A DNA stretch of 29,743 nucleotides from Macrostomum lignano (Eukaryota). The stretch lies in NCBI GenBank assembly GCA_002269645.1, contig NIVC01004974.1, positions 1-29,743 on the forward strand. Reading direction: 5' to 3'. Below, piece after piece: positions 8,054-29,535 of the stretch (its first letter is position 1; each line of letters starts with the position of its first letter). Position numbers and translations under genes: made by a program. The notes beneath the pieces are model-generated. The model had not been told where the DNA came from. It searched no databases and was given only the letters and a program-made list of their open reading frames with translations.

Positions 8054-8608
8054 ATGTCGAATTCGTCTGCCGCGGCCCCAGCTGAGCTATTAAAGTTCGT
8101 TGGCTGTTCAGAATTTCGCAGCCGAATCGCCCTGTCAATCCTCACTGGTAAGCCGGTGAAAATCTCGTCGATTCGAGCTAAGCTAGAGAATCCCGGCGTG
8201 CGCGAATTCGAGATCAGCTATCTGCGCTTGATTGAGCAGATTACCAATGGCACTGTGGTTAGAATTAGCGAGACAGGCACTGTTGTGCTGGTCAGGCCGG
8301 GTATACTTACTGGCGGCGAGTTCGAATTCGATTGCTGTGCTGAGCGGGGCATTGGCTACTATCTGGAGCCGCTCATGCTGCTTGGCCCGTTTGGCAAGCG
8401 GTCGCTTAGCGTTAAACTGACTGGCGTGTCAAACAACTCTATGGATCCCAGCGTTGAAGCTGTTAGTTACTCTTGCCTACCGTTGCTGCGGCGATTTCTT
8501 GGCCGCGATTCGGGCTCCGAGTTGAGTCTCGAACGGCGTGGTTGCCATCCGGTTGGCGGGGCCGAAGTTCGATTCCAGTGCCCGACCGTGTCCAAGCTCA
8601 AACCGTTG
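8054..8608 (+). CDS. RCL1: RNA 3'-terminal phosphate cyclase-like protein, exon 1 (185 aa)
   Basis: FVGCSEFRSRIALSILTGKPVKI, IRAKLENPGVREFEISYLRLIEQITNG, RGIGYYLEPL and RRGCHPVGGAEV are typical RCL1/RTC-family segments. ATG at 8054; donor TTG|GTAAGT at 8609, phase 0. Confidence 0.95.
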
Positions 8609-8694
8609 GTAAGTGGTCTGCAGTCTAAAAAGGCTTTTCAAGTTGCCGCAACACTTTCTGCGAAGGTTCTACTATATTCTAAGTAGATCTGAAG

Positions 8695-10660
8695 GTATTC
8701 AAGGTCACTCGAGACATTCAAAGTCACTCCAGGAAATTCAAAGTCACTCCATGACCTTCAAAGTCACTCCATGACATTCAAAGTCACTCCATGACATTCA
8801 AAGTCACTCTATATCATTCAAAGTCACTCCATGACATTCAAAGTCACTCCATATCATTCAAAGTCACTCCATATCATTCAAAGTCACTCCATGACATTCA
8901 AAGTCACTCCAGGACATTCAAAGTTACTCCATATCATTCAAATTCACTCCATGACATTCAAAGTCACTCCATATCATTCAAAGTCACTCCATAACATTCA
9001 AAGTCACTCCATGACAATAAAAACTCACTCCATGACATTCAAAGTCACTCTAGGACATTCAAAGTCACTCCATATCATTCAAAGTCACTCCATAACATTC
9101 AAAGTCACTCCATGACAATAAAAACTCACTCCATGACATTCAAAGTCACTCTAGGACATTCAAAGTCACTCCATATCATTCAAAGTCACCCCATTTCATT
9201 CAAAGTCACTCTATGACATTCAAAGTCACTCCATATCATTCAAAGTCACTCCATGACATTCAAAGTCACTCCATATCATTCAAAGTCACTCCATAACATT
9301 CAAAGTCACTCCATGACAATAAAAACTCACTCCATGACATTCAAAGTCACTCTAGGACATTCAAAGTCACTCCATATCATTCAAAGTCACCCCATTTCAT
9401 TCAAAGTCACTCTATGACATTCAAAGTCACTCCATATCATTCAAAGTCACTCCAGGAAATTCAAAGTCACTCCATGACATTCAAAGTCACTCCATGACAT
9501 TCAAAGTCACTCCATGACATTCAAAGTCACTCCATGACATTCAAAGTCACTCTATATCATTCAAAGTCACTCCATGACATTCAAAGTCACTCCATATCAT
9601 TCAAAGTCACTCCATATCATTCAAAGTCACTCCATGACATTCAAAGTCACTCCAGGACATTCAAAGTTACTCCATATCATTCAAATTCACTCCATGACAT
9701 TCAAAGTCACTCCATATCATTCAAAGTCACTCCATAACATTCAAAGTCACTCCATGACAATAAAAACTCACTCCATGACATTCAAAGTCACTCTAGGACA
9801 TTCAAAGTCACTCCATATCATTCAAAGTCACTCCATATCATTCAAAGTCACCCCATTTCATTCAAAGTCACTCTATGACATTCAAAGTCACTCCAGGACA
9901 TTCAAAGTTACTCCATATCATTCAAATTCACTCCATGACATTCAAAGTCACTCCATATCATTCAAAGTCACTTCATAACATTCAAAGTCACTCCATGACA
10001 ATAAAAACTCACTCCATTACAATAAAAAGTCACTCCATGACATTCAAAGTCACTCCATAACATTCAAAGTCACTCCATATCATTCAAAGTCACCCCATTT
10101 CATTCAAAGTCACTCTATGACATTCAAAGTCACTCCATATCATTCAAAGTCACTCCATGACATTCAAAGTCACTCCATATCATTCAAAGTCACTCCATGA
10201 CATTCAAAGTCACTCCATATCATTCAAAGTCACTCCATGACATTCAAAGTCACTCCATGACATTCAAAGTCACTCCATATCATTCAAAGTCACTCCATAT
10301 CATTCAAAGTCACCCCATTTCATTCAAAGTCACTCCATGACATTCAAAGTCACTCCATATCATTCAAAGTCACTCCATATCATTCAAAGTCACTCCATAT
10401 CATTCAAAGTCACCCCATTTCATTCAAAGTCACTCCATGACATTCAAAGTCACTCTATATCATATAAAATCACTCAAGGACATTCAAAGTCACTCCATAT
10501 CATTCAAAGTCACTCCATGACATTCAAAGTCACTCCATAACATTCAGTCACTCCAGGACATTCAAAGTCACTCCATATCATTCAAAGTCACTCCATGACA
10601 TTCAAAGTCACTCCATAACATTCAGTCACTCCAGGACATTCAAAGTCACTCCATGAAATT
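8695..10660 (+). repeat. 20-bp minisatellite (ATTCAAAGTCACTCCATGAC/ATC), about 98 copies, RCL1 intron 1
   Basis: Tandem units with a higher-order block duplication: the block at 8791 recurs at 9534. Confidence 0.97.
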
Positions 10661-11047
10661 GATAATCACTTCATGATGATGATAGGCTAAAAATCACTTA
10701 TCTCATAAAATTAGTCTTTATTTTAAAAAAAGGACAATGAAGTCTTAGTTAAGCATAAAAAAGAGAAATGCTAATTCGTAGGGTTCTTAATCAAGTTCTA
10801 TCATGGATCGCAAGCGCGCCATGAGTTGCAGAATCGTAGAAGAGTAGCGAAAGAGTCATCCAATAATCTTTGTGTTGGCGCTTAACTTTCTACTAACTCA
10901 GTAGGCTAGTTAGAGTGCAATTGAAGCTCAATATGCTACACGGGGTGTTTATTGCGTAACTGTGTACCTCTGACTCTGTGATGCTAAAGCGCTTCTTCTG
11001 CGACTGCAGAATGCCGCTGAAATGCGTTCAGAGATGTAACTCTAATG

Positions 11048-11264: not shown

Positions 11265-11540
11265 CTCAAATTCATCAAGCGATGCAAATTGCGCTTTGAA
11301 CACAACTCTGTGACTCTAAGCACGTAAAGTAATAAACGTAGCACGTCTCAAATACGACTCTACGGCCCCAGAGTCGGTTCAGAGTTGGAGATAATAAAAT
11401 TCTTTAAAATAATTCTTGACGACTTTTTGGCGACTTCTGGCGTACCCTGACATCTGGCAAGTGACACTCTGGGACGCTTCTTGGCCTGTGTACCATTTTT
11501 ATCGGGATAGTTGGATATTTTTCAATTGCTCCCCCTTCAG

Positions 11541-11864
11541 GACCTGACACAGCCGGGCAAAATCCATCGCATCCGCGGCATGTCCTTCACCTGCAAAGTG
11601 TCGCCCGGCATGAACGGCCGCCAGATTGTCTCGGCCAAGGAGCTGCTTCGCCGACTGGTGCCAGACGTGTTGCTTACAGCGGACCATTGCACCGGCGCCA
11701 GGGGCGGCCAGTCGCCCGGCTTTGGCGTCACCCTGGTGGCCGAGACTCGCGACGGCTGTCGCTACGTGGCCGAGTGCATGAGCCGGCCGTCCGGAGTGGC
11801 CGTCGCCGAGGCCTCCGTGCCCGAGGATGTCGGGCTGACCGCCGCCCAGCTGCTCTGCGAAGAG
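11541..11864 (+). CDS. RCL1: RCL1 exon 2 (108 aa)
   Basis: Acceptor cccccttcAG at 11539-11540. Encodes GKIHRIRGMSFTCKVSP, GQSPGFGVTLVAETRDG and PEDVG...LLCEE. Donor GAG|GTCTAA at 11865 is weak but is required by homology. Confidence 0.93.
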
Positions 11865-11969
11865 GTCTAATAAGTCAAAACGATTATATGTATCCTTGAA
11901 ATATTATGGTTTAAGAGATGCAAGAACTCCGCTTCCTGCTAGGGATATACTGCTCTACATATATAGCTC

Positions 11970-12218: not shown

Positions 12219-12514
12219 TCTGCAATTCGGTTGCATAGAGCATTATTTGCAGTAGTAGTATTAGTAGTAGTATAATGGGAGTAGTAGATTGGCATGTGTA
12301 GATTACAGAAGTAGCAGTAGTAGCAGTAGTATTCGTAAAAAAATCACGCATGCCGTCCTCTAAATAATGAGCTTTTGAAAGTCTCGCTCCTTTCCGCTTT
12401 TTAATTAACAATGTATTGGCATAAGTATGGATGGTTTCAGTTTTATAGAATTCATCTTTTCGATTTCAGGTTTTGCCTATACTTCTACTGTAAGTAGAGT
12501 TGCACAAATTTCAG

Positions 12515-12778
12515 ATCTATCGCGGCGGCTGCGTTGACTCAATTAGTCAACCGCTGGCCTTGGCTTTGATGGCCCTGTGCGATCGGGATGCCAGCAGATT
12601 GCTAACTGGCCCATTGACTCCGCACAGTGTCCGCTTGCTGCGACTGTTGCGCCAGTTTCTTGGCGTCACGTTTCGATTGCAATCGCGACCGGCTGGCGAC
12701 GACGGACTGGGCGGCGACAAAGTGCTGTGCACCTGCGTTGGCTCCGGGTTTGCCAATCTCAGTAAACTGGTGCGATAG
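12515..12778 (+). CDS. RCL1: RCL1 exon 3 (87 aa plus stop)
   Basis: Acceptor aatttcAG at 12513-12514. IYRGGCVDSISQPLAL...GPLTPHS...GGDKVLCTCVGSGFANLSK matches the RCL1 C-terminus; GGCVDS replaces the catalytic-His motif of RtcA. Total about 380 aa. Confidence 0.95.
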   Translation: MYRGGCVDSISQPLALALMALCDRDASRLLTGPLTPHSVRLLRLLRQFLGVTFRLQSRPAGDDGLGGDKVLCTCVGSGFANLSKLVR

Positions 12779-13621: not shown

Positions 13622-13797
13622 CTCCGACACATCATACCTCCGACACTTGGTATCTCCGACGCCTCAGATCTGACACCTCATATCTGACAAACTTGGCAAC
13701 GGACTTCATACATGTATCTCCGTTAGGTTTTGTGTTTAGCTTGTCGGAGATATGAGGCGTCTGAGATACGAAGTGTCAGAGGTATGGAGTGTCGAAG
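13622..13797. repeat. Imperfect inverted repeat, 50-bp arms, about 76-nt spacer
   Basis: 13622-13671 matches the reverse complement of 13748-13797 at 43/50 positions without gaps (counted by eye). Confidence 0.9.
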
Positions 13798-15185
13798 ATA
13801 CGAGCTGTCAGAGATGAGAGCTGTCGGAGGTATGGAGTGTCTGAGATATGAAGCGTCGGAGCTACGATCTGTCGGAGATATGAGCTGTCGAAGTTATAGT
13901 GTCGGAGATATGAGCTGTCGAAGATATTAAGTATCGGAGATATGAGCTGTCGAAGATATAGTGTCGGAGATATGAAGTATCGGAGATATGAGCTGTCGAA
14001 GATATAGTGTCGGAGATATGAGCTGTCGGAGATATAGTGTCGGAGATATGAGCTGTCGAAGATATGAAGTATCAGAGATATGAGCTGTCGGAGATATAGT
14101 GTCAGAGATATGAGCTGTCGGAGATATGAGCTGTCGAAGATATGAAGTGTCAGAGATATGAGCTGTCAGAGACATGAGCTGTCGAAGATATAGTGTCAGA
14201 CATATGAAGTAATCGGAGATATGAAGTAATCGGAGATATGAAGTATCGGAGATATGAGCTGTCGAGATATAGTGTCGGAGATATGAAGTAATCGGAGATA
14301 TGAAGTATCGGAGATATGAGCTGTCGAAGATATAGTGTCGGAGATATGAGCTGTCGAAGATATGAAGTATCAGAGAAATGAGCTGTCAGAGATATGAGCT
14401 GTCGAAGATATAGTGTCAGACATATGAAGTAATCGGAGATATGAAGTATCGGAGATATGAGCTGTCGAAGATATAGTGTCGGAGATATGAAGTATCGGAG
14501 ATATGAAGTATCGGAGATATGAGCTGTCGAAGATATAGTGTCGGAGATATAGTGTCGGAGATATGAAGTAATCGGAGATATGAAGTATCGGAGATATGAG
14601 CTGTCGAAGATATAGTGTCGGAGATATGAAGTAATCGGAGATATGAAATAATCGGAGATATGAAGTATCGGAGATAGGAGCTGTCGAAGATATAGTGTCG
14701 GAGATATGAAGTATCGGAGATATGAGCTGTCGAAGATATAGTGTCGGAGATATGAGCTGTCGGAGATATGAAGTATCGGAGATATGAGCTGTCGAAGATA
14801 TAGTGTCGGAGATATAGTGTCGGAGATATGAAGTAATCGGAGATATGAAGTAATCGGAGATATGAAGTATCGGAGATATGAGCTGTCGAAGATATAGTGT
14901 CGGAGATATGAGCTGTCGGAGATATGAAGTATCGGAGATATGAGCTGTCGAAGATATAGTGTCGGAGATATAGTGTCGGAGATATGAAGTAATCGGAGAT
15001 ATGAAGTAATCGGAGATATGAAGTATCGGAGATATGAGCTGTCGAAGATATAGTGTCGGACATATGAAGTAATCGGAGATATGAAATATCGGAGATATGA
15101 GCTGTCGAAGATATAGTGTCGGAGATATGAAGTATCGGAGATATGAGCTGTCGAAGATATAGTGTCGGAGATATGAAGTGTAGGA
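13741..15185 (+). repeat. Composite minisatellite of 14-17-bp units (ATATGAGCTGTCGRAG, ATATGAAGTA(A)TCGGAG, ATATAGTGTCGGAG)
   Basis: Tandem mixture of related units with higher-order blocks; the 307-aa minus-strand ORF is a repeat translation. Confidence 0.95.
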
Positions 15186-15857
15186 AATTATATGTCGTAG
15201 ATATGACGCCCCGTAACTTTCTGATTTTCAGGCATCTATATGCTTTTAGGTCGGTTGGCCCTCTTGAACTAAAATCGCACGACAGATTTTTCAAACCGAA
15301 TATTGTTGAATTATTGGGCATGCACATTCGAGCTGCCAATGGCTAAACTAAGCTGGAAGAAGTTGGGCCGTTAAGGACATATATGAAGCTGTAGTGCATA
15401 CAAATGGCATTATAAATAATTCCATATTTTTATTCCACCAAGCAAAGCAATCGACAGCGCTTCGCTCCAATCTTATACTCATAGCTGACAGGCCTGTTCA
15501 GTGCGCGCGAGGCAAAACAGCTGCACAGCTTGCATATTTAATCCTGTCTACACCCGCATAGCTGGATTTTACTGAGCTGCCAATCTAAACTGCATGGTCA
15601 TGGCAGATATTTGCCCGCCCGTAGCTGTCGTATTTTTCTAGTAAATCCGACTCAATCTACACTTAGTTAATTTGTGCGGTCAGATAGTACTAAATTTATG
15701 TGATGTCTGAGAGACACGATTATAGGAGTTCATATCATTTATGCCATCCATGCTAATTGTTTGCTCTGTGTACATACGGGCGTTTTACTTAATTGGCTTT
15801 TTCTCGGTTTGGGTGTTTGGGTGAGTCGGAATTGGGGAGTCAGGGGTTGGATAGATG

Positions 15858-17720
15858 AGTGTCAGCAAGAATCGGATTGGGGTGTCAGCAAGAATCGAAT
15901 TGGGTGTCAGCAAGAGTCAGATTGGGTGTCAGCAAGAGTCGGATTGGGGTGTCAGCAAAAGTCGGATTGGGTGTCAGCAAGAGTCGAATGGGGTGTCAGC
16001 AAGAATCGAATTGGGTGTCAGCAAGAGTCGAATGGGGTGTCAGCAGAATCGAATTGGGTGTCAGAAAGAGTCGGATTGGGTGTCAGCAAGAGTCGAATGG
16101 GGTGTCAGCAAGAGTCGGATTTGGGTGTCAGAAAGAGTTGGATTGGGGTGTCAGCTAGAGTCGGATTGGGTGTCAGCAAGAGTTGGATTGGGGTGTCAGC
16201 AAGAGTCGGATTGGGTGTCAGCAAGAATCGAATTGGGTGTCAGCAAGAGTCAGATTGGGTGTCAGCAAGAGTCGGATTGGGGTGTCAGCAAGAGTCGGAT
16301 TGGGTGTCAGCAAGAGTCGAATGGGGTGTCAGCAAGAATCGAATTGGGTGTCAGCAAGAGTCGAATGGGGTGTCAGCAAGAGTCGGATTGGGTGTCAGCA
16401 AGAGTCGAATGGGGTGTCAGCAAGAGTCGGATTGGGGTGTCAGCAAGAATCGAATTGGGTGTCAGCAAGAATCGAATTGGGTGTCAGCAAGAGTCGAATG
16501 GGGTGTCAGCAAGAGTCGGATTGGGTGTCAGCAAGAGTCGGATTGGGTGTCAGCAAGAGTCGGATTGGGGTGTCAGCAAGAGTCGGATTGGGTGTCAGCA
16601 AGAGTCGAATGGGGTGTCAGCAAGAGTCGGATTGGGGTGTCAGCAAGAATCGAATTGGGTGTCAGCAAGAATCGAATTGGGTGTCAGCAAGAGTCGAATG
16701 GGGTGTCAGCAAGAGTCGGATTGGGTGTCAGCAAGAGTCGGATTGGGTGTCAGCAAGAGTCAGATTGGGGTGTCAGCAAGAGTCGGATTGGGTGTCAGCA
16801 AGAATCGAATTGGGTGTCAGCAAGAGTCGAATGGGGTGTCAGCAAGAGTCGATTGGGTGTCAGCAAGAGTCGAATGGGTGTCAGCAAGAGTCGGATTGGG
16901 GTGTCAGCAAGAATCGAATTGGTGTCAGCAAGAATCGAATTGGGTGTCAGCAAGAGTCGAATGGGGTGTCAGCAAGAGTCGGATTGGGTGTCAGCAAGAG
17001 TCGGATTGGGGTGTCAGCAAGAGTCGGATTGGGGTGTCAGCAAGAGTCGGATCGGGTGTCAGCAAGAGTCGGATTGGGGTGTCAGCAAGAGTCGGATTGG
17101 GGTGTCAGCAAGAGTCGGATTGGGGTGTCAGCAAGAGTCGGATTGGGGTGTCAGCAAGAGTCGGATTGGGGTGTCAGCAAGAGTCGGATTGGGGTGTCAG
17201 CAAGAGTCGGATTGGGTGTCAGCAAGAGTCGGATTGGGGTGTCAGCAAGAGTCGGATTGGGGTGTCAGCAAGAGTCGGATTGGGGTGTCAGCAAGAGTCG
17301 GATTGGGGTGTCAGCAAGAGTCGGATTGGGGTGTCAGCAAGAGTCGGATTGGGGTGTCAGCAAGAGTCGGATTGGGGTGTCAGCAAGAGTCGGATTGGGG
17401 TGTCAGCAAGAGTCGGATTGGGGTGTCAGCAAGAGTCGGATCGGGTGTCAGCAAGAGTCGGATTGGTGTGTCAGCAAGAGTCGGATTGGGGTGTCAGCAA
17501 GAGTCGGATTGGGGTGTCAGCAAGAGTCGGATTGGGGTGTCAGCAAGAGTCGGATTGGGGTGTCAGCAAGAGTCGGATTGGGGTGTCAGCAAGAGTCGGA
17601 TTGGGGTGTCAGCAAGAGTCGGATTGGGGTCAGCAAGAGTCGGATTGGGTGTCAGCAAGATTCGAATCTGGTGTCAGCAAGAGTCGGATTGGGGTGTCAG
17701 CAAGAGTCGGATTGGGTGTA
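15858..17720 (+). repeat. 21-22-bp minisatellite (GTGTCAGCAAGAGTCGGATTGG(G)G), about 85 copies
   Basis: Tandem units; the 500-660 aa ORFs in three frames are repeat translations. Confidence 0.97.
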
Positions 17721-17985: not shown

Positions 17986-19597
17986 ATTCTAATAGCTAAT
18001 AGCGGCTTGTGAATAGTCAGCCTCACAATTCTAATAGCTAATAGCGGCTTGTGAATAGTCAGCCTCACAATTCTAATAGCTAAGAGCGGCTTGTGAATAG
18101 TCAGCCTCACAATTCTAATAGCTAATAGCGGCTTGTGAATTGTCAGCCTCACAATTCTAATAGCTAAGAGCGGCTTGTGAATAGTCAGCCTCACAATTTT
18201 AATAGCTAATAGCTGCTTGTGAATAGTCAGCCTCACAATTCTAATAGCTAATAGCGGCTTGTGAATTGTCAGCCTCACAATTCTAATAGCTAATAGCTGC
18301 TTGTGAATAGTCAGCCTCACAATTCTAATAGCTAATAGCGGCTTGTGAATTGTCAGCCTCACAATTCTAATAGCTAGTAGCGGCTTGTGAATTGTCAGCC
18401 TCACAATTCTAATAGCTAATAGCGGCTTGTGAATTGTCAGCCTCACAATTTAATAGCTAGTAGCGGCTTGTGAATTGTCAGCCTCACAATTTTAATAGCT
18501 AGTAGCGGCTTGTGAATTGTCAGCCTCACAATTCTAATAATAGCTAGTAGCGGCTTGTGAATTGTCAGCCTCACAATTTTAATAATAGCTAGTAGCGGCT
18601 TGTGAATAGTCAGCCTCACAATTCTAATAGCTAATAGCGGCTTGTGAATAGTCAGCCTCACAATTCTAATAGCTAATAGCGGCTTGTGAATAGTCAGCCT
18701 CACAATTCTAATAGCTAAGAGCGGCTTGTGAATTGTCAGCCTCACAATTCTAATAGCTAATAGCGGCTTGTGAATTGTCAGCCTCACAATTCTAATAGCT
18801 AATAGCGGCTTGTGAATTGTCAGCCTCACAATTCTAATAGCTAGTAGCGGCTTGTGAATTGTCAGCCTCACAATTTAATAGCTAGTAGCGGCTTGTGAAT
18901 TGTCAGCCTCACAATTCTAATAGCTAATAGCGGCTTGTGAATTGTCAGCCTCACAATTTTAATAGCTAGTAGCGGCTTGTGAATTGTCAGCCTCACAATT
19001 CTAATAGCTAAGAGCGGCTTGTGAATAGTCAGCCTCACAATTGTAATAGCTAATAGCGGCTTGTGAATTGTCAGCCTCACAATTCTAATTGCTAGAGCGG
19101 CTTGTGAATTGTCAGCCTCACAATTCTAATAGCTATAGCGGCTTGTGAATTGTCAGCCTCACAATTCTAATAGGCTTTGTGAATAGTCAGCCTCACAATT
19201 CTAATAGCTAATAGCGGCTTGTGAATTGTCAGCCTCACAATTCTAATAATAGCTAGTAGCGGCTTGTGAATTGTCAGCCTCACAATTCTAATAATAGCTA
19301 GTAGCGGCTTGTGAATTGTCAGCCTCACAATTCTAATAATAGCTAGTAGCGGCTTGTGAATTGTCAGCCTCACAATTCTAATAGCTAGTAGCTTGTGAAT
19401 TGTCAGCGCTAGTAGCTTGTGAATTGTCAGCCTCACAATTCTAATCAGCCTCAGTAGCGGCTTGTGAATTGTCAGCCTCACAATTCTAATAAGTAGCTAG
19501 TCAGCCTCACAATTCTAATAATAGCTAGTAGCGGCTTGTGAATTGTCAGCCTCACAATTCTAGTAGTAGCTAGAGGCTTGTGAATAGTCAGCCTCAC
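17986..19597 (+). repeat. 42-bp minisatellite (TTGTGAATWGTCAGCCTCACAATTCTAATAGCTARTAGCGGC), about 38 copies, with an internal palindrome
   Basis: The period equals the 14-aa repeat in the minus-strand ORFs; each unit contains TTGTGA-N10-TCACAA. Confidence 0.97.
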
Positions 19598-20379
19598 TGT
19601 TGCCGGTCAGGTCCTCAGTCCACTCTCGAACTCCGAACTGAGCCGAGTCTCTTTTCTACCTGTCCTAGTCAGCCTCGGGCCAAATCAGGTCTGACTTTCA
19701 CTGACACTAGTTTCTCTTTCCCCTACTAGCCATTCAGCTTCTGTCAATGCTGCTGCTTTGTCCGCGCGAACCGTCCCACCAGCAACTGTTTGATCCGATC
19801 TGCTCTCGCATCTCTACCCCCCCCCCAAGACGACCTTGTCATTCAATCTTCCTCACTCGCGCTCTCACTCGCCGTCTGCCCCCCTTCGCTCATCGCACCC
19901 AACTATCCAGCGCTCCCGGGCTTGTCGTCCGTCCCCTTTCCCTGGAGCAACTCGGAGCACTCCTCACCTCCCCTTTCAGCTCGATTCCGACAGTCTCTGC
20001 TGCCTCCTTTTTAAAAAGAAAGCAAGCCAAGCAAGCCTTTATAATCCCTTTAGGAAGGATTCGCGGAAGCCACTCGGCGTATTGCAATATTCAATCTGCT
20101 CCCCCCGGGAGAGCACACTGGCTGACTAGAAGAACTCCATACTGCTGCTACTGACTGCCGAACCAATTTACTTAGGTCGCTAAACTGCCCACAAGGAAAA
20201 TAGAAAGCGAGGAAAAGAAACAGAGCGGCAAAAGGGGAGGAGAGAGGAAGAAGAAGAGAGTCTAAAGCCAAGCCACTCTACTCGCGCAGAAGAATACCAA
20301 TCGATTTTCTGCCCGGACTCCAGTCCCCCGAAAAATCTCTCTCTCTCAGGCTCAGCTAGGGTCTCATTCCCGCCTAATC

Positions 20380-20490
20380 CCCGCCAGCCACCCCCAAGTT
20401 CCGCCCCCCCCCCCCCGGTTAAGCGTGTGTGCGGAGTGTGCCAGAAGGGCAGACCGGTTCCCCTGTTGTGTGCGCGCGGGTATAAATCCC
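20380..20490 (+). promoter_or_regulatory. Possible promoter or 5' region of the PKA regulatory subunit gene
   Basis: C-run and GC-box-like tract at 20380-20418; TATAAAT at 20481-20487; CpG-rich. The TATA is only about 30 nt from the ATG, so the region may instead be 5' UTR. Confidence 0.25.
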
Positions 20491-20511
20491 ATAGCAGCTG
20501 GTGAGAGAGCC

Positions 20512-21153
20512 ATGAGCAGCTCAGCTGACTCCAGGCCCTCTGCTGCCACTCGTCGACAGCCCCAAGTGCCGGCCGGATTTCGCGAACTCCTGCAGGACTT
20601 CGCCGTTGCCGTCCTGCGCCAATCGCCCGACGATGCTGTAGAATTTGCGATCGAATATTTCACCAGATTGCGAATAGGCCGAATGTCCAGCCAGAAACCA
20701 GTTGAAGCCTCCTTGGCGCCGCCAGCCGAGAAGGAGCAACAGGACTCGGAGACGCCGATGTCACCGAAAGACGTCGACGAAGACGAGCCGCCGATTACGG
20801 CGCCTCCGCCTCGTCGCGGCACTCGCCGGGTGGCGGTGGCCGGCGAGAGCTTCGACCCGGAGAAGGAGGACCCGGCCGATGCGGCCAGGCCCATTGTGAC
20901 GCACCCGAAGTCCGACGAGCAGCGACGTCGGCTCAACCAGGCCGTGTCTCACATTGTGCTGTTCCAGTGCCTCGACGAGGACCAGAAGCGTGACGTCATC
21001 AACGCCATGTTCGAACGGCGCAGCGAGCCTGGCGACCGGATCATCACTCAGGGCGAGGACGGCGATAATTTCTACGTGATCGAGTCCGGGGTGTACGACA
21101 TCTACGTGCTGATCGACGGGAAGGACACTAAAGTTGGGCAGTACAATAACCAG
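20512..21153 (+). CDS. PRKAR2: cAMP-dependent protein kinase type II regulatory subunit, exon 1 (214 aa): D/D domain, linker and inhibitor site, start of CNB-A
   Basis: [35 protein letters not shown] is an RII-type dimerisation/docking domain. Also [25 protein letters not shown] and [14 protein letters not shown]. Donor CAG|GTGAGG at 21154, phase 0. Confidence 0.95.
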
Positions 21154-21204
21154 GTGAGGCCTGACGTCTCAGCTGATTTACAGTGCGGGGGTTACATATA
21201 GTCT

Positions 21205-21990
<786 letters not shown>

Positions 21991-22235
21991 GTTGCGCAGT
22001 CGAGTTAGTGCCATAAATTATTCATAAACAAAACCATCATCAAATCAAATCATTAAAAATACATACTTCTATAAAGAAGTTTACAGAGCAACACAATATT
22101 TTGTGTCCAAGTCGTGTGTGATCGCACAAGCTACTGCTCGATGGCTGCGTGCCTTTAGCACCCGCCAGGCTTGAAATCGATATAGCGATATAGTGGCGCC
22201 ATGATCAAGTTGATAACCTAATGCACATCCCCCAG

Positions 22236-22826
22236 GGCTCCTTCGGCGAGCTCGCTCTGATGTACAACGCGCCACGCGCGGCCACCATTGTCTGCGCCGA
22301 GCCGGGCAGCCTGTGGGCCATGGACCGGGACACCTTCCGGCGTCTAGTGCTGAAGAAGGCCTTCCAGAAGCGCGTCATGTACGAGACTCTGCTGGAATCG
22401 GTGCCCCTGCTCAAGCAGCTCGCTCCGTACGAGCGGATGAGCGTAGCGGACGCTCTTAAATCGAAAAGCTGCGCCGACGGCGAGAGAATCATCGCCCAAG
22501 GTGAACTTGGCAACGAGATGTTCTTCGTTGAAGATGGCGAAGTTCGAATCACTTGCCGTCGCGGGGACGGCGGCGAGGAGGTGGAGATCTCGCGGCTTGG
22601 CAAAGGCGGCTACTTCGGCGAGCTGGCCCTGCTGACTAAACAGCCTCGAGCCGCCAGCGTCTACGCCTGCGGCGGTCGATGCAAAGTCGCCGTGCTGGAC
22701 GTTGGTTCGTTCGAACGCCTGCTCGGGCCGTGCCTGGACATCATGCGGCGGTCAATCGACACCTACCAGCAGCAGCTCGCCACCATATTTGGCAGCCTGG
22801 AGTCTGTCCCGGACCTGAGAGACTGA
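22236..22826 (+). CDS. PRKAR2: PKA type II regulatory subunit, exon 2 (196 aa plus stop): phosphate-binding cassette A and CNB-B
   Basis: Acceptor catcccccAG at 22234-22235. GSFGELALMYNAPRAATI, YFGELALLTKQPRAASVYA and FERLLGPCLDIMRRSIDTYQQQL keep both cAMP cassettes (Glu and Arg) and the RII-type C-terminal Tyr. Confidence 0.96.
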   Translation, partial: GSFGELALMYNAPRAATIVCAEPGSLWAMDRDTFRRLVLKKAFQKRVMYETLLESVPLLKQLAPYERMSVADALKSKSCADGERIIAQGELGNEMFFVEDGEVRITCRRGDGGEEVEISRLGKGGYFGELALLTKQPRAASVYACGGRCKVAVLDVGSFERLLGPCLDIMRRSIDTYQQQLATIFGSLESVPDLRD

Positions 22827-23445
22827 CCAGTCTCAGGGAGTTATGAAGATAGCTCCAGACTCAATTGATATAGCAGACTGTGGATGCCGATGAAACTGTT
22901 TCTGTTGTTCGCTTGCAACAGCCTATAAGATATTTTCAAGGTTCCGCCGTACTCGACTTATAGTTCGATACTCCGTTACTTTATTGGTCCCACCGTACTA
23001 AAATTGACAGTAACTAAAATTACAGTTTCTCAGTAGAAGTAATGATGTGCTCTATTTTATTTCTTAGCTAAACCCTTATTCGTTAATTAATTAAAGTTCT
23101 TCAAGTAGGACATCACCTAAGCAGTCAGGTAAATTGGCTTCTTTCTCAGTTGTACCGCAATGTTAGGTTCTGTTTTTTTGTTTCCATAATGCTCGCTTTA
23201 GTTAATAACATCTTTCATGTTATAATTCTCTTTGAGTCTCATCATTTTTATCAAGTAGTTCCTATGCATAGCCTGGAAAATATGATTTTGAGTTTGCACT
23301 GGCTGGTTTCGGGTTCCTTCAATGCTGGTGTTTCTGAAGTCCCCCTGTCTTTTATTCTTACTCGCTGTGTTTTTTTACTTTTTTAAGTCACTACTCAAGC
23401 TTAACTAGTCACTAATTGTATACTCGTGCTTTATAAAGTTAATTT

Positions 23446-23659
23446 GGGGTTGTAGCCTAGTGGTTAGAGCGTCGGACTCACGACTGAAAGGTCGAGGGTT
23501 CGATTCTCGACCCGCTTCAGTTCACCCAGCTGTTAGCTGGGGTAACTGAGGGTGTCTGTGGCGACCCCCAGTCCTTACAGCCGTACGCAGCCTTCAGATG
23601 CGCCGCGCAATAGCTGTGTCGGTTGCACATCTACCCATTAGGGCAGGTGTGCGTAATCA

Positions 23660-24530: not shown

Positions 24531-25034
24531 TGTTTACTCGCAGCCTACACCTAAACGTGATTTTCTCCTTCTGCCGGTCCCATAGAAAGCGAGAATTGCT
24601 CAAATTGAGGAAATTTGCATTCGCTATGCTTGTCCCCGTCGTCAGTCTGTCTCAGCCTTTTCTTCAGTTCAGCGACTCCCTTTTCATTTTCATTTCGCTT
24701 TTCCCGCAGCTCTGCAGTACAAACCCATCGATTATATTGCAGTTTTCAGCAAGCAAGAGCTGAACAAATAGAAAGAGCTCTGGGGCTCTTGTAAAATAGG
24801 GTAAAGAGCCGAAACGATGGGAAAAGTCGGTTGTTCGGGGCTTCTTTAGTGCAGTGCTCTGCTAAATATTACTCTTTGTGTTCTGCGACTGTTGCTCAGT
24901 GTTTGCCTGTGAAAGGCAGGCTTTCGGTCTTGGAGAAAACTGCAAAAATACCAACTCAATTCAGACTGTTATTATTTGGTTTTTTGCAGGTAATAACTGG
25001 CTCGATGTGTGTTTTTCTAACTCACTACAGTTCC

Positions 25035-26290
25035 ATTCCTCTCTCCCTTCCTCCCTTCCTTCCTCCCTCCCTTCCTCTCTCCCTTCCTCTCTCCCTTCCT
25101 CTCTCCCTTCCTCTCTCCTTCCTCTCTCCCTTCCTCTCTCCCTTCCTCTCTCCCTTCCTCTCTCCCTTCCTCTCTCCCTTCCTCTCTCCCTTCCTCTCTC
25201 CCTTCCTCTCTCCCTTCCTCTCTCCCTTCCTCTCTCCCTTCCTCTCTCCCTTCCTCTCTCCCTTCCTTTCTCCTTTCCTTTCTCCCTTCCTCTCTCCCTT
25301 TCTCTCTCCCTTCTTCTCTCCCTTCTTTCTCCTTTCCTCTCTTCCTTCCTCCCTTCCTTCCTCCCTCCCTTCCTCTCTCCCTTCCTCCCTTCCTTCCTTC
25401 CTCCCTCCCTCCCTCCCTTACTCTCTCCCTTTCTCTCTCCCTCCTTCTCTCCCTTCCTCTCCCCTTCCTCTCTCCCTTCCTCTCTCCCTTTTTCTATCCT
25501 TTCTTTTCTTCCTTCCTCTTTTCCTTCCTCTCTCCCTTCCTCTCTCCCTTTCTCTCTCCCTTCTTCTCTCCCTTTCTCTCTCCCTTCTTCTCTCCCTTCT
25601 TTCTCCTTTCCTCTCTTCCTTCCTCCCTTCCTTCCTCCCTCCCTTCCTCTCTCCCTTCCTCCCTTCCTTCCTTCCTCCCTCCCTCCCTCCCTTACTCTCT
25701 CCCTTTCTCTCTCCCTCCTTCTCTCCCTTCCTCTCCCCTTCCTCTCTCCCTTCCTCTCTCCCTTTTTCTATCCTTTCTTTTCTTCCTTCCTCTTTTCCTT
25801 CCTCTCTCCTTCCTCTCTCCCTTTCTCTCTCCCTTTCTCTCTCCCTTCTTCTCTCCCTTTCTCTCTCTCCCTTCTTCTCTCCCTTCTTTCTCCTTTCCTC
25901 TCTTCCTTCCTCCCTTCCTTCCTCCCTCCCTTTCTCTCTCCCTTCTTCTCTCCCTTCTTTCTCCTTTCCTCTCTTCCTTCCTCTCTCCCTTCCTCTCTCC
26001 CTTTCTCTCTCCCTTCTTCTCTCCCTTCTTTCTCCTTTCCTCTCTTCCTTCCTCCCTTCCTTCCTCCCTCCCTTCCTCTCTCCCTTCCTCCCTTCCTTCC
26101 TTCCTCCCTCCCTCCCTCCCTTACTCTCTCCCTTTCTCTCTCCCTCCTTCTCTCTCTTCCTCTCCCCTTCCTCTCTCCCTTCCTCTCTCCCTTTCTCTAT
26201 CCTTTCTTTTCTTCCTTCCTCTTTTCCTTCCTCTCTCCCCCTTCCGCAGTCCCTTCCTCTCTTAACTCTCCTATCTTCCTATCTTTACCT
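25035..26290 (+). repeat. Polypyrimidine satellite based on a 12-bp CCTTCCTCTCTC unit
   Basis: Almost purine-free; the marker words CCTTACTC and CTATCCTTTC each recur about 430 bp apart, indicating block duplication. Confidence 0.95.
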
Positions 26291-27139: not shown

Positions 27140-28300
27140 CTCTCCACACACCGTCTCTCTTCTCTCCTCTGCCTTCCCCTCTCCCCTCTCTACACCCTCT
27201 CCCTTCCTCTCCTCTCACCTCACCTCACCTCCTCTCCTCTCCTCTCCTCTCCTCTCACCTCACCTCACCTCCTCTCTCCTCCTCTCCTCTCACCTCACTC
27301 ACCTCACCTCACCTCCTCTCTCTCCTCTCCTCTCACCTCACCTCACCTCCTCTCCTCTCCTCTCCTCTCCTCTCCTCTCACCTCACCTCCTCTCCTCTCC
27401 TCTCCTTTCCCCTGCTCTCCTCTCCTCTGCTTCCTCTCCTCTCCTCTCCTCTCCTCTCCTTTCCTTTTCTCTGCTCTCCTCTCCTCTACTCTCCTCTCAC
27501 CTCACCTCCTCTCCTCTCCTCTCCTCTCACCTCACCTCACCTCACCTCCTCTCCTCTCCTCTCCTCTCACCTCACCTCACCTCCTCTCCTCTCCTTTCCC
27601 TGCTCTCCTCTCCTCTGCTTCCTCTCCTCTCCTCTCCTCTCCTCTCACCTCACCTCACCTCACCTCCTCTCCTCTCCTCTCCTCTCACCTCACCTCACCT
27701 CACCTCCTCTCCTCTCCTTTCCCCTGCTCTCCTCTCCTCTGCTTCCTCTCCTCTCCTCTCCTCTCCTCTCACCTCACCTCACCTCACCTCACCTCCTCTC
27801 CTCTCCTCTCCTCTCACCTCACCTCACCTCCTCTCCTCTCCTTTCCCCTGCTCTCCTCTCCTCTGCTTCCTCTCCTCTCCTCTCCTCTCCTCTCACCTCA
27901 CCTCACCTCACCTCCTCTCCTCTCCTCTCCTCTCACCTCACCTCACCTCACCTCCTCTCCTCTCCTTTCCCCTGCTCTCCTCTCCTCTGCTTCCTCTCCT
28001 CTCCTCTCTCCTCTCCTCTCCTCTCCTCTCCTTCCTTTCTCTGCTCTCCTCTCCTCTACTCTCCTCTCCTCTCACCTCCTCTCCTCTGCTTCCTCTCCTC
28101 TCCTCTCCTCTCCTCTCCTCTCCTCTCCTTTCCTTCCCCTGCTCTCCTCTCCTTCCTCTCCTCTCCTCTCCTCTCCTCTCCTCTACTCTCCTCTCTCTCA
28201 CCTCCTCTCCTCTGCTTCCTCTCTCTCCTCTCCTCTCCTCTCCTCTCCTCTCCTCTCCTTTCCTTCCCCTGCTCTCCTCTCCTCTTACTCTCCTCTCTGT
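27140..28300 (+). repeat. (CTCCT)n/(CTCAC)n pentamer satellite
   Basis: Pentamer units punctuated by TTTCCCCTG and CTGCTTC. Confidence 0.95.
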
Positions 28301-29044
28301 TTAGTTTTTGCCTTGGCTCTCTTATCACTTTTGCACCGAAGCAATTATTAAGAAGATATTAAAATGCATTTATTAAAATGCATTTATTAACTTCCCAGGC
28401 ACACTGACTGATACAATGCCTGCACTGGACAAAGGCCTTAGCTCTATCAAAAGATTTAACGTAGCTTACTATAATTTTTAATAAACCACACTTCAACTAT
28501 CATTGTGCCTGCCTAATATTTTGCGCAGGCTATGAACAGCATGCGGCTTCTCAGATTGGTATGGATCTATCCACCTCAATAGCCATCAATGCTCCATTCA
28601 AAGCTTCTCTGTCTCCCACTCTTCCATTTTCTGCCTTAGAGCTGACAGCTTTGGGCCTGTTTTTTCAAAAAAGAGATGAATAAAACCCCGCATTCATATC
28701 GGAGTCCAGACTCCAAGCGGTTTTGCTGCGCTGAGAATATAATGGAGTAGAGGAGATGCAGTTTCTAATAAGCAGGCAAAACTCTATCCAAGGACATCTG
28801 ACAAAATCTGGACTAGTAGCTCGTAGAAGTCTGTACCCCAACGCTAAGTCTTGCCAAATTTGCCCACACAAGAGGAATTGACGAAATTAGAGGGACACCT
28901 TCACTGATTATGAACTACTTCAAAACGACGCATGACCCCTACTTTAGCGTCTAATGTAATTGTACCGTAGAAAAAATTCTAAACCGTTTATAACAAGTTG
29001 AAAAGTTTCGAATATAAAGTCACTGCAATGCTGTTTTTTACCGT

Positions 29045-29535
29045 CTTCTCCTCTCTTCTCTTCTCCTCTCGTCTGCTCTCCTTTCCTCTCGTCTGCTCTG
29101 CTCTCCTCTCCTCTCCTCTACTCTCCTCTCACCGCACCTCCTCTCCTCTGCTCCTCTCCTCTCCTCTCTTCTCCTCTCCTCTCCTTTCCCCTGCTCTCCT
29201 CTCCTCTGCTTCCTCTCCTCTCCTCTCCTCTCCTCTCCTCTCTTCTCCTCTCCTCTCCTTTCCCCTGCTCTCCTCTCCTCTGCTTCCTCTCCTCTCCTCT
29301 CCTCTCCTCTCCTCTTCTCTCTTCTCCTCTCCTCTCCTTTCCTTTCCCTGCTCTCTCTCCTCTCCTCTCCTCTCCTCTCCTCTCTCTCTCATCCATTCAT
29401 CCACTCATTTAATACCATTTCCTATCATCGTCTCATTTTATTTTATCGCATCTAATCTAATTTAATCTCATCTCATCTCATTTATCGCATCTCATCTCAT
29501 CTCATCTCATCTCATCTCATCTCATCTACTCATTT
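29045..29535 (+). repeat. (CTCCT)n tract (to about 29390) followed by (ATCTC)n (about 29460-29535)
   Basis: Same pentamer family and punctuation motifs as the 27140-28300 array. Confidence 0.92.

Follow-up and report, generated by a model that had tools for sequence, protein, structure and literature searches.

The Macrostomum lignano window (the whole stretch of DNA analysed, 29,743 bp) contains an intact gene for a regulatory (R) subunit of PKA. The encoded protein groups with type II (RII) subunits and has alanine at the P-site of its inhibitor segment. Textbooks define the two PKA holoenzyme types by a difference at this site, which is a substrate in RII but a pseudosubstrate in RI. We consider it probable that the gene is one copy in a flatworm-wide RII group (group A), that the site became a pseudosubstrate before macrostomorphs and parasitic flatworms diverged, and that the subunit inhibits by a non-phosphorylatable mechanism.

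The R-subunit gene and its setting

The gene lies on the + strand and comprises two exons, 20512-21153 and 22236-22826, encoding a protein of 410 amino acids. Its features are as follows.

20512-21153, + strand: exon 1, residues 1-214, from the first ATG of the open frame to the donor CAG/GTGAGG at 21153/21154
20566-20670, + strand: RII-type dimerisation/docking (D/D) domain, residues 19-53 (Pfam PF02197 RIIa, E=2.6e-12)
20812-20850, + strand: inhibitor (pseudosubstrate) segment, R101-S113; R102 is P-6, R105/R106 are P-3/P-2 and A108 is the P-site
20833-20835, + strand: P-site codon GCG (Ala108), replacing the autophosphorylated Ser of other animal RII
21154-22235, + strand: single GT-AG intron of 1,082 bp, about 70% of it a (GTTA)n microsatellite
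22236-22826, + strand: exon 2, residues 215-410 plus the TGA stop at its end; acceptor side CCCCCAG
22236-22286, + strand: phosphate-binding cassette A, GSFGELALMYNAPRAAT, with the canonical Glu and Arg
22608-22658, + strand: phosphate-binding cassette B, GYFGELALLTKQPRAAS, with RII-type PRAAS (PRAAT in RI)

Exon 1 specifies an N-terminal extension, the D/D domain, the linker, the inhibitor site and the beginning of cAMP-binding domain A. Exon 2 supplies the remainder of that domain, together with domain B and a C-terminal tail of RII type. Indel-free colinearity of the product with intronless paralogues validates the splice junction. Across the junction the protein reads VGQYNNQ/GSFGELAL, compared with VGQYDNQGSFGELAL in those paralogues. 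Residue numbering assumes that the first ATG is the start, although the frame stays open 5' of it as far as 20425. For the sister locus, the NCBI model carries a 'partial' mark. A TATAAA motif at 20481-20486, 26-31 nt 5' of the assumed ATG, would leave almost no 5' UTR. It is preceded by a run of about 15 C (20403-20417).

The codons at 20812-20838 are CGT CGC GGC ACT CGC CGG GTG GCG GTG. Translation gives the linker R101-RGTRRVA108-VAGES, with Ala108 encoded by GCG, exactly as the earlier note on this DNA had written it. One transversion separates GCG from TCG.

The best database match is M. lignano BOX15_Mlig010423g1 (99% identity), and same-species paralogues are 74% and 71% identical. Alanine is encoded at five more M. 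lignano loci, L001-L005, in assembly GCA_002269645.1. The codon is GCC at L001-L004 and GCG at L005. L005 (NIVC01000075.1) is a copy of the window locus, with 92-94% DNA identity where 19501-23500 was compared; it has the same intron at a different length. The two loci fit diverged duplicate or homeologous copies, as judged from sequence, rather than alleles of one locus. Paralogue P0003 is encoded at L001 (3001-4164) and paralogue P0004 at L002, L003 and L004 (3001-4161), all without introns. P0004 is encoded identically on its three contigs. One lineage may have gained the intron; alternatively, the intronless P0003 and P0004 may be retrocopies. An eIF4E gene lies upstream in L001.

Tandem repeats make up about 48% of the window (14,378 bp of positions 1-29743) and comprise at least 14 different mini- and microsatellite arrays, which yield long spurious ORFs. 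The (GTTA)n microsatellite in the only intron of the R-subunit gene spans 21206-21959, with about 189 copies and 92% matches. The 42-mer satellite in the flank and the repeat in the intron are common to the window locus and L005. On the same strand, 5' of the R-subunit gene, is a second gene. Its segments match Pfam RTC positions 2-171, RTC_insert and RTC positions 172-220, and it looks like a gene of RCL1/RtcA type from its sequence. The first intron of this RTC gene contains the 2-kb 20-mer array. A further candidate ORF gave no Pfam match. Repeats and other genes in the window are listed below.

732-1373, + strand: candidate ORF of 213 aa, with an acidic N-terminal half and a Gly/Arg-rich C-terminal end
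8054-8686, 11511-11870 and 12500-12778, + strand: second gene, three ORF segments matching RNA 3'-terminal phosphate cyclase
8697-10676: 20-mer, 99 copies
13742-15206: 16-mer, 92 copies
15859-17719: 23-mer, 83 copies
17986-19407: 42-mer, 34 copies
25032-26262: 12-mer, 103 copies
27154-28298 and 29044-29390: CT-rich arrays

RII descent and the alanine P-site

The protein was assigned to RII using its domains, database scores and phylogeny. The D/D domain matches PDB chains that consist of the RIIalpha D/D domain only (E ~1e-10), and 25 of 37 residues are identical to RIIalpha 5-41. Pfam found PF00027 cNMP_binding twice (E=4.1e-40), and the cassettes GELALMYNAPRAAT and GELALLTKQPRAAS are both canonical. 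The best match to solved RII structures has E=1e-117. In a phmmer search of all PDB chains, RIIalpha scored 394 bits over residues 18-402 and RIIbeta 362 bits; RIalpha scored 237 bits over residues 77-393 only. The C-terminal tail LATIFGSLESVPDLRD, of the FGS...DLR type, and a YERM motif match invertebrate RII, whereas RI ends YNSFVSLSV. Finally, we built a neighbour-joining (NJ) tree from 58 sequences and 279 columns, leaving out the inhibitor-site columns. The tree was rooted on RIalpha/RIbeta sequences taken from PDB alignments, the RI query used for these being 100% identical to 6NO7_B. It places the window protein well inside RII, with RI as outgroup.

The D/D domain, both cAMP cassettes, the C-terminal tail, the bit scores and the tree all bear out the earlier note's assignment to RII. 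Its reading of the inhibitor site as a non-phosphorylatable RRxA sequence like that of RI is also correct: the site is RRVA108V. However, to call the subunit a 'hybrid' overstates the case, as nothing in the protein beyond the P-site residue is RI-derived. There is no RI-type D/D domain, no PRAAT in cassette B, no RI C-terminus and no grouping with RI. Since only the P-site residue is RI-like, the protein is RII by descent and architecture. The autophosphorylated RRxS site of classical RII is absent, and the site conforms to the RRx[A/G] of RI (RRVAV). On its sequence, therefore, the protein is of the RII clade by evolution and lies outside the classical biochemical definition of type II.

Tyr279, at the position of RIalpha W260, was considered as a second RI-like feature. 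It is uninformative; all aligned non-vertebrate RII have Tyr or Phe here. AKAP anchoring is plausible, given that 25/37 residues match the RIIalpha D/D helices. At the position of RIIalpha Ile3, a determinant of AKAP binding, the window protein has Pro17.

Two other accounts of Ala108 were weighed. Alanine at the P-site could stem from an error of sequencing or assembly, from a private mutation or from decay of this gene copy. GCG is only one base from TCG, tandem repeats fill 48% of the window, and the genome has many near-duplicate loci. Against this, alanine recurs at the five other loci with differing synonymous codons (GCG and GCC). With a single amino acid encoded by two synonymous codons over six loci, sequencing error and private mutation are ruled out, and we rejected both. 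Furthermore, the frame is intact, every conserved motif is present, the splice sites are canonical, and all 36 retrieved sequences with the group-A motif, from across the phylum, have Ala or Gly. We regard the chance of an artefact as negligible. Only slightly less improbable is that the protein is in truth RI, or a chimera produced by RI/RII recombination. Textbooks give RRxA/G as the inhibitor motif of RI, and Pfam RIIa matches RI D/D domains too. However, the protein scores 394 bits to RIIalpha against 237 to RIalpha, and its D/D domain matches chains that hold the RIIalpha D/D domain alone. PRAAS in cassette B and the FGS...DLR tail are those of invertebrate RII and not the YNSFVSLSV of RI. 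The tree places the protein within RII even though inhibitor columns were left out. The context flanking the site is also shared with Ser-type flatworm RII and is unlike the AISAEVYTEED of RI.

Group A and the other flatworm RII groups

Every named flatworm orthologue of group A has the motif RRx[A/G]VA[A/G]ES[FYW]DPEK. They come from Macrostomum, tapeworms (Taenia, Mesocestoides, Spirometra), flukes (Opisthorchis, Calicophoron, Fasciolopsis, Echinostoma, Paragonimus, Schistosoma, Heterobilharzia) and monogeneans (Protopolystoma, Cichlidogyrus), and all have Ala or Gly at the P-site. Across 28 flatworm orthologues, R105, R106, V109, A110, E112 and S113 are invariant. The 36 retrieved sequences with the motif, many of which are transcript contigs, divide into 26 with Gly, 10 with Ala and none with Ser or Thr. 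By comparison, Ser or Thr occupies the P-site in 213 of 260 single-length R subunits with a recognisable inhibitor motif. The other animal RII retrieved have RRxS nearly throughout. Among the matches listed, Ser is found in all named RII of molluscs, annelids, nemerteans, arthropods, echinoderms, hemichordates, amphioxus, corals and sponges.

Scored with a group-A profile, full-length members reached 614-715 bits, above the 576 bits of P0019, the next RII that is full-length and single-domain. Among named non-members of this kind, the best was from the annelid Owenia (572 bits). Scores between those of the members and P0019 belong to a few multi-domain proteins and to group-A fragments truncated at the N-terminus. 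A search of 1.84 billion representatives, with a cut-off of about 248 bits so that RI was not reached, exposed second flatworm paralogues and a jellyfish case. A second Protopolystoma paralogue, P0276, has Gly at the P-site. The jellyfish protein, P0221 of Sanderia malayensis (EukProt), is RII-like and includes a D/D domain; its inhibitor site, RRQAVAAES, has Ala as the P-site residue. From its sequence, P0221 is apparently an independent loss of Ser outside flatworms. Together, the Gly of P0276 and the Ala of P0221 indicate that the switch between substrate and pseudosubstrate occurred more than once.

The earlier note viewed the subunit as a single case, one base from normal. This does not hold; Ala or Gly is fixed across the flatworm-wide orthologue group and every M. 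lignano copy seen. The note also allowed that Ala-site RII subunits might already be common and characterised in this lineage. They are common, being fixed group-wide, but we found no evidence that they have been characterised. Within group A the P-site flips between Ala and Gly and does not become Ser, although Ala to Ser takes a single base. This looks like selection for a small, non-phosphorylatable residue. RIalpha (RRGAI, Ala) and RIbeta (RRGGV, Gly) use the same repertoire of two residues.

Some further features of inhibitor sites were noted. Ser113 (20848-20850) is the P+5 residue in AES[FYW]DP and is invariant in flatworm groups A, B and C (the latter two are described below). At this position, other aligned animal RII are variable (R/T/A/H/G/P). 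Protist proteins of 560-750 aa (P0008, P0036, P0053, P0061, P0074 and others) have a tandem-duplicated R-subunit core, and each half has its own RRx[A/G] inhibitor site. Far larger multi-repeat proteins extend to 3,779 aa (P0147, with six matched stretches).

Parasitic flatworms also have Ser-type RII. Group B has a D/D domain and the site RRHSVAAESFNPA or RRQSVAAES, with members from Schistosoma, Heterobilharzia, Clonorchis, Paragonimus and Calicophoron. In group C, which is without a D/D domain, the site is RRQSVAAESFDPEK; members are from S. mansoni (P0312), S. japonicum, Heterobilharzia, Calicophoron and probably Cichlidogyrus. Hence, trematodes have Ser-type RII paralogues and a monogenean probably does too. 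No group B or C member from Macrostomum or tapeworms was among the matches listed, up to 120 per list. In the NJ tree, groups A, B and C form a single flatworm clade within RII. Bootstrap support is modest for group A (64%) and for all flatworm RII (A+B+C, 53%), and 100% for group B. Group A has the shortest branches and is closest to the RII of other animals, whereas the branches of groups B and C are longer.

The simplest reading of these sequences is that flatworm-specific duplications were followed by the change of one copy to a pseudosubstrate. Parasitic flatworms retain two Ser-type RII groups, and so the autophosphorylation switch has been partitioned among paralogues, not lost. More tentatively, early flatworms may have split the ancestral RII role between an anchored, pure-pseudosubstrate RII (group A) and subunits that keep the autophosphorylation/phosphatase cycle (groups B and C), and some lineages may have the pseudosubstrate form alone. 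We see this as an open possibility that falls a little short of probable. If true, such lineages would have a natural type II PKA whose termination is phosphatase-independent. They would also allow the contribution of P-site autophosphorylation to anchored PKA signalling to be tested directly.

We found no paper on pseudosubstrate RII in flatworms, or on the missing Ser, in the openly accessible full-text literature. A 2025 survey describes RRxS as entirely conserved in metazoan RII (PMC12608923). A phylum-wide conserved RII orthologue with Ala or Gly contradicts this generalisation. The survey required >60% identity to reference sequences, and we suspect that this threshold filtered flatworm RII out. 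Flatworms and inhibitor sites are absent from a paper on AKAP and R-subunit evolution (PMC12083921), and the S. mansoni kinome paper lists six PKA-R genes without further treatment. The sequences are public, and many are annotated 'type II regulatory subunit'. What is new is an RII-clade subunit with a conserved pseudosubstrate. The surprise is only moderate, because switches have recurred in R subunits (RI/RII, protists, the jellyfish P0221) and work on S-to-A mutants already exists. In schistosomes PKA is essential (PMC2724707), and parasite-specific holoenzyme regulation may interest helminth pharmacology.

Predicted holoenzyme cycle and known systems

The likely behaviour of the window protein can be extrapolated from mammalian RII and RI. 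Briefly, the dimer would dock via its D/D domain and RRVAV would fill the catalytic cleft, with the P-6 Arg helping. Binding of cAMP at the two canonical cassettes would then free the catalytic (C) subunit. As the P-site could not take phosphate, the holoenzyme would skip the autophosphorylation that type II PKA carries out in a single turnover. Once freed, the R subunit would never be phospho-blocked and could recapture C without a phosphatase. MgATP would probably stay bound and unhydrolysed, as in type I, and tight R:C binding itself would stay nucleotide-independent, as in RII. By analogy, the window protein is likely an RII-style inhibitor that cannot be phosphorylated and re-inhibits without a phosphatase.

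In the mammalian RIIbeta holoenzyme, the P-site is autophosphorylated in a single turnover and the phosphate slows reassociation ~60-fold in MgATP (PMC4497662). Hence, a phosphatase is part of the cycle. Reassociation requires dephosphorylation (PMC5987717). An alanine site removes the autophosphorylation step, and so re-inhibition should depend on cAMP clearance alone. The flatworm protein also provides a natural experiment in anchored PKA signalling where the autophosphorylation/phosphatase step is predicted to be absent. The cellular outcome may be less simple. In mouse dentate gyrus, overexpressed RIIbeta-S112A raised, and did not lower, PKA substrate phosphorylation (PMC7921646). It follows that the cellular outcome of losing Ser cannot be predicted from kinetics alone.

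Two further proposals bear on this scheme. One builds on the earlier note, in which RRGT may be a relocated phospho-site: autophosphorylation would have moved one turn upstream, to Thr104 in R101-R-G-T, and the switch would be restored. RRGT does fit R-R-x-T, and [RK][RK]x[ST] lies directly upstream of the RR pair in 5/36 group-A sequences against 0/213 Ser-type sequences. However, this excess is due to a PPRR prefix and not to a conserved Thr. The paralogues P0003, P0004 and P0091 have Pro in place of Thr104, as does P0006, and over the 36 group-A sequences the residue varies widely (T7, A7, G7, S5, P4, R3, K2, Y1). Ser or Thr at this position (P-4) is equally common in group A (12/36) and Ser-type RII (67/213). 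The PKA consensus prefers a hydrophobic residue at +1, where Thr104 would have Arg. Furthermore, Arg102 aligns with the conserved P-6 Arg of RII (NRFxRRxS) and so is an ordinary P-6 Arg. The 410-aa translation holds no RRx[ST] site besides RRGT104; RRS171 and RRS387 are wrongly spaced. Failing on both conservation and consensus, a relocated site is very unlikely. In the other proposal, alanine at the site gives the holoenzyme full type I behaviour, with MgATP required for tight R:C binding. High affinity in RIalpha is the joint effect of the pseudosubstrate, ATP and two Mg ions, and with Ala in the site ATP would not be consumed. Against this, the regions outside the P-site are RII-like in the window protein, and RIIbeta binds C with a KD of 0.14-0.39 nM in MgATP, MgADP or EDTA alike (PMC4497662, Table 1). 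As this affinity is nucleotide-independent, that of the RII scaffold comes from contacts outside the P-site, and tight binding by the window protein is expected to be nucleotide-independent and not RI-like. Hence, the earlier note's hint of an RI-like need for MgATP is not implied by the alanine, and we judge it unlikely, if less so than a relocated phospho-site. From the RII-like scaffold and the RIIbeta data, we predict instead a high-affinity holoenzyme without MgATP.

The closest comparison is with mammalian and invertebrate RII subunits (RIIalpha and RIIbeta; PDB 3J4Q, 3TNP, 2QVS). Like the window protein, these have a D/D domain, the P-6 Arg, RR at P-3/P-2, two cassettes and an RII tail. 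They differ at the P-site, where the window protein has Ala instead of Ser and so would not be autophosphorylated, and at the RIIalpha Ile3 position, where it has Pro. Mollusc and annelid RII are 52-56% identical to the window protein. RIalpha and RIbeta (PDB 6NO7, 4DIN) have in common with it a pseudosubstrate with a small P0 residue, whereas their D/D domain, post-site context (AISAEVYTEED), cassette B and C-terminus all differ. Flatworm groups B (RRHSVAAES in Schistosoma, Clonorchis and Paragonimus) and C fall in the same NJ clade and share the VAAES[FY][DN]P context. Unlike the window protein, they keep a phosphorylatable Ser and have longer branches, and group C is without a D/D domain. 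PKI, the heat-stable inhibitor of PKA, likewise presents a pseudosubstrate: its P-6 residue is Arg, P-3/P-2 are RR and P0 is Ala. However, it has no cAMP-binding domains and no D/D domain, and cAMP cannot release it. Engineered RIIbeta S112A (PMC7921646) has the same change at the same position of an RII scaffold. That mutant is artificial and was expressed over a wild-type background; the flatworm protein is natural and long conserved, and its surroundings have co-evolved.
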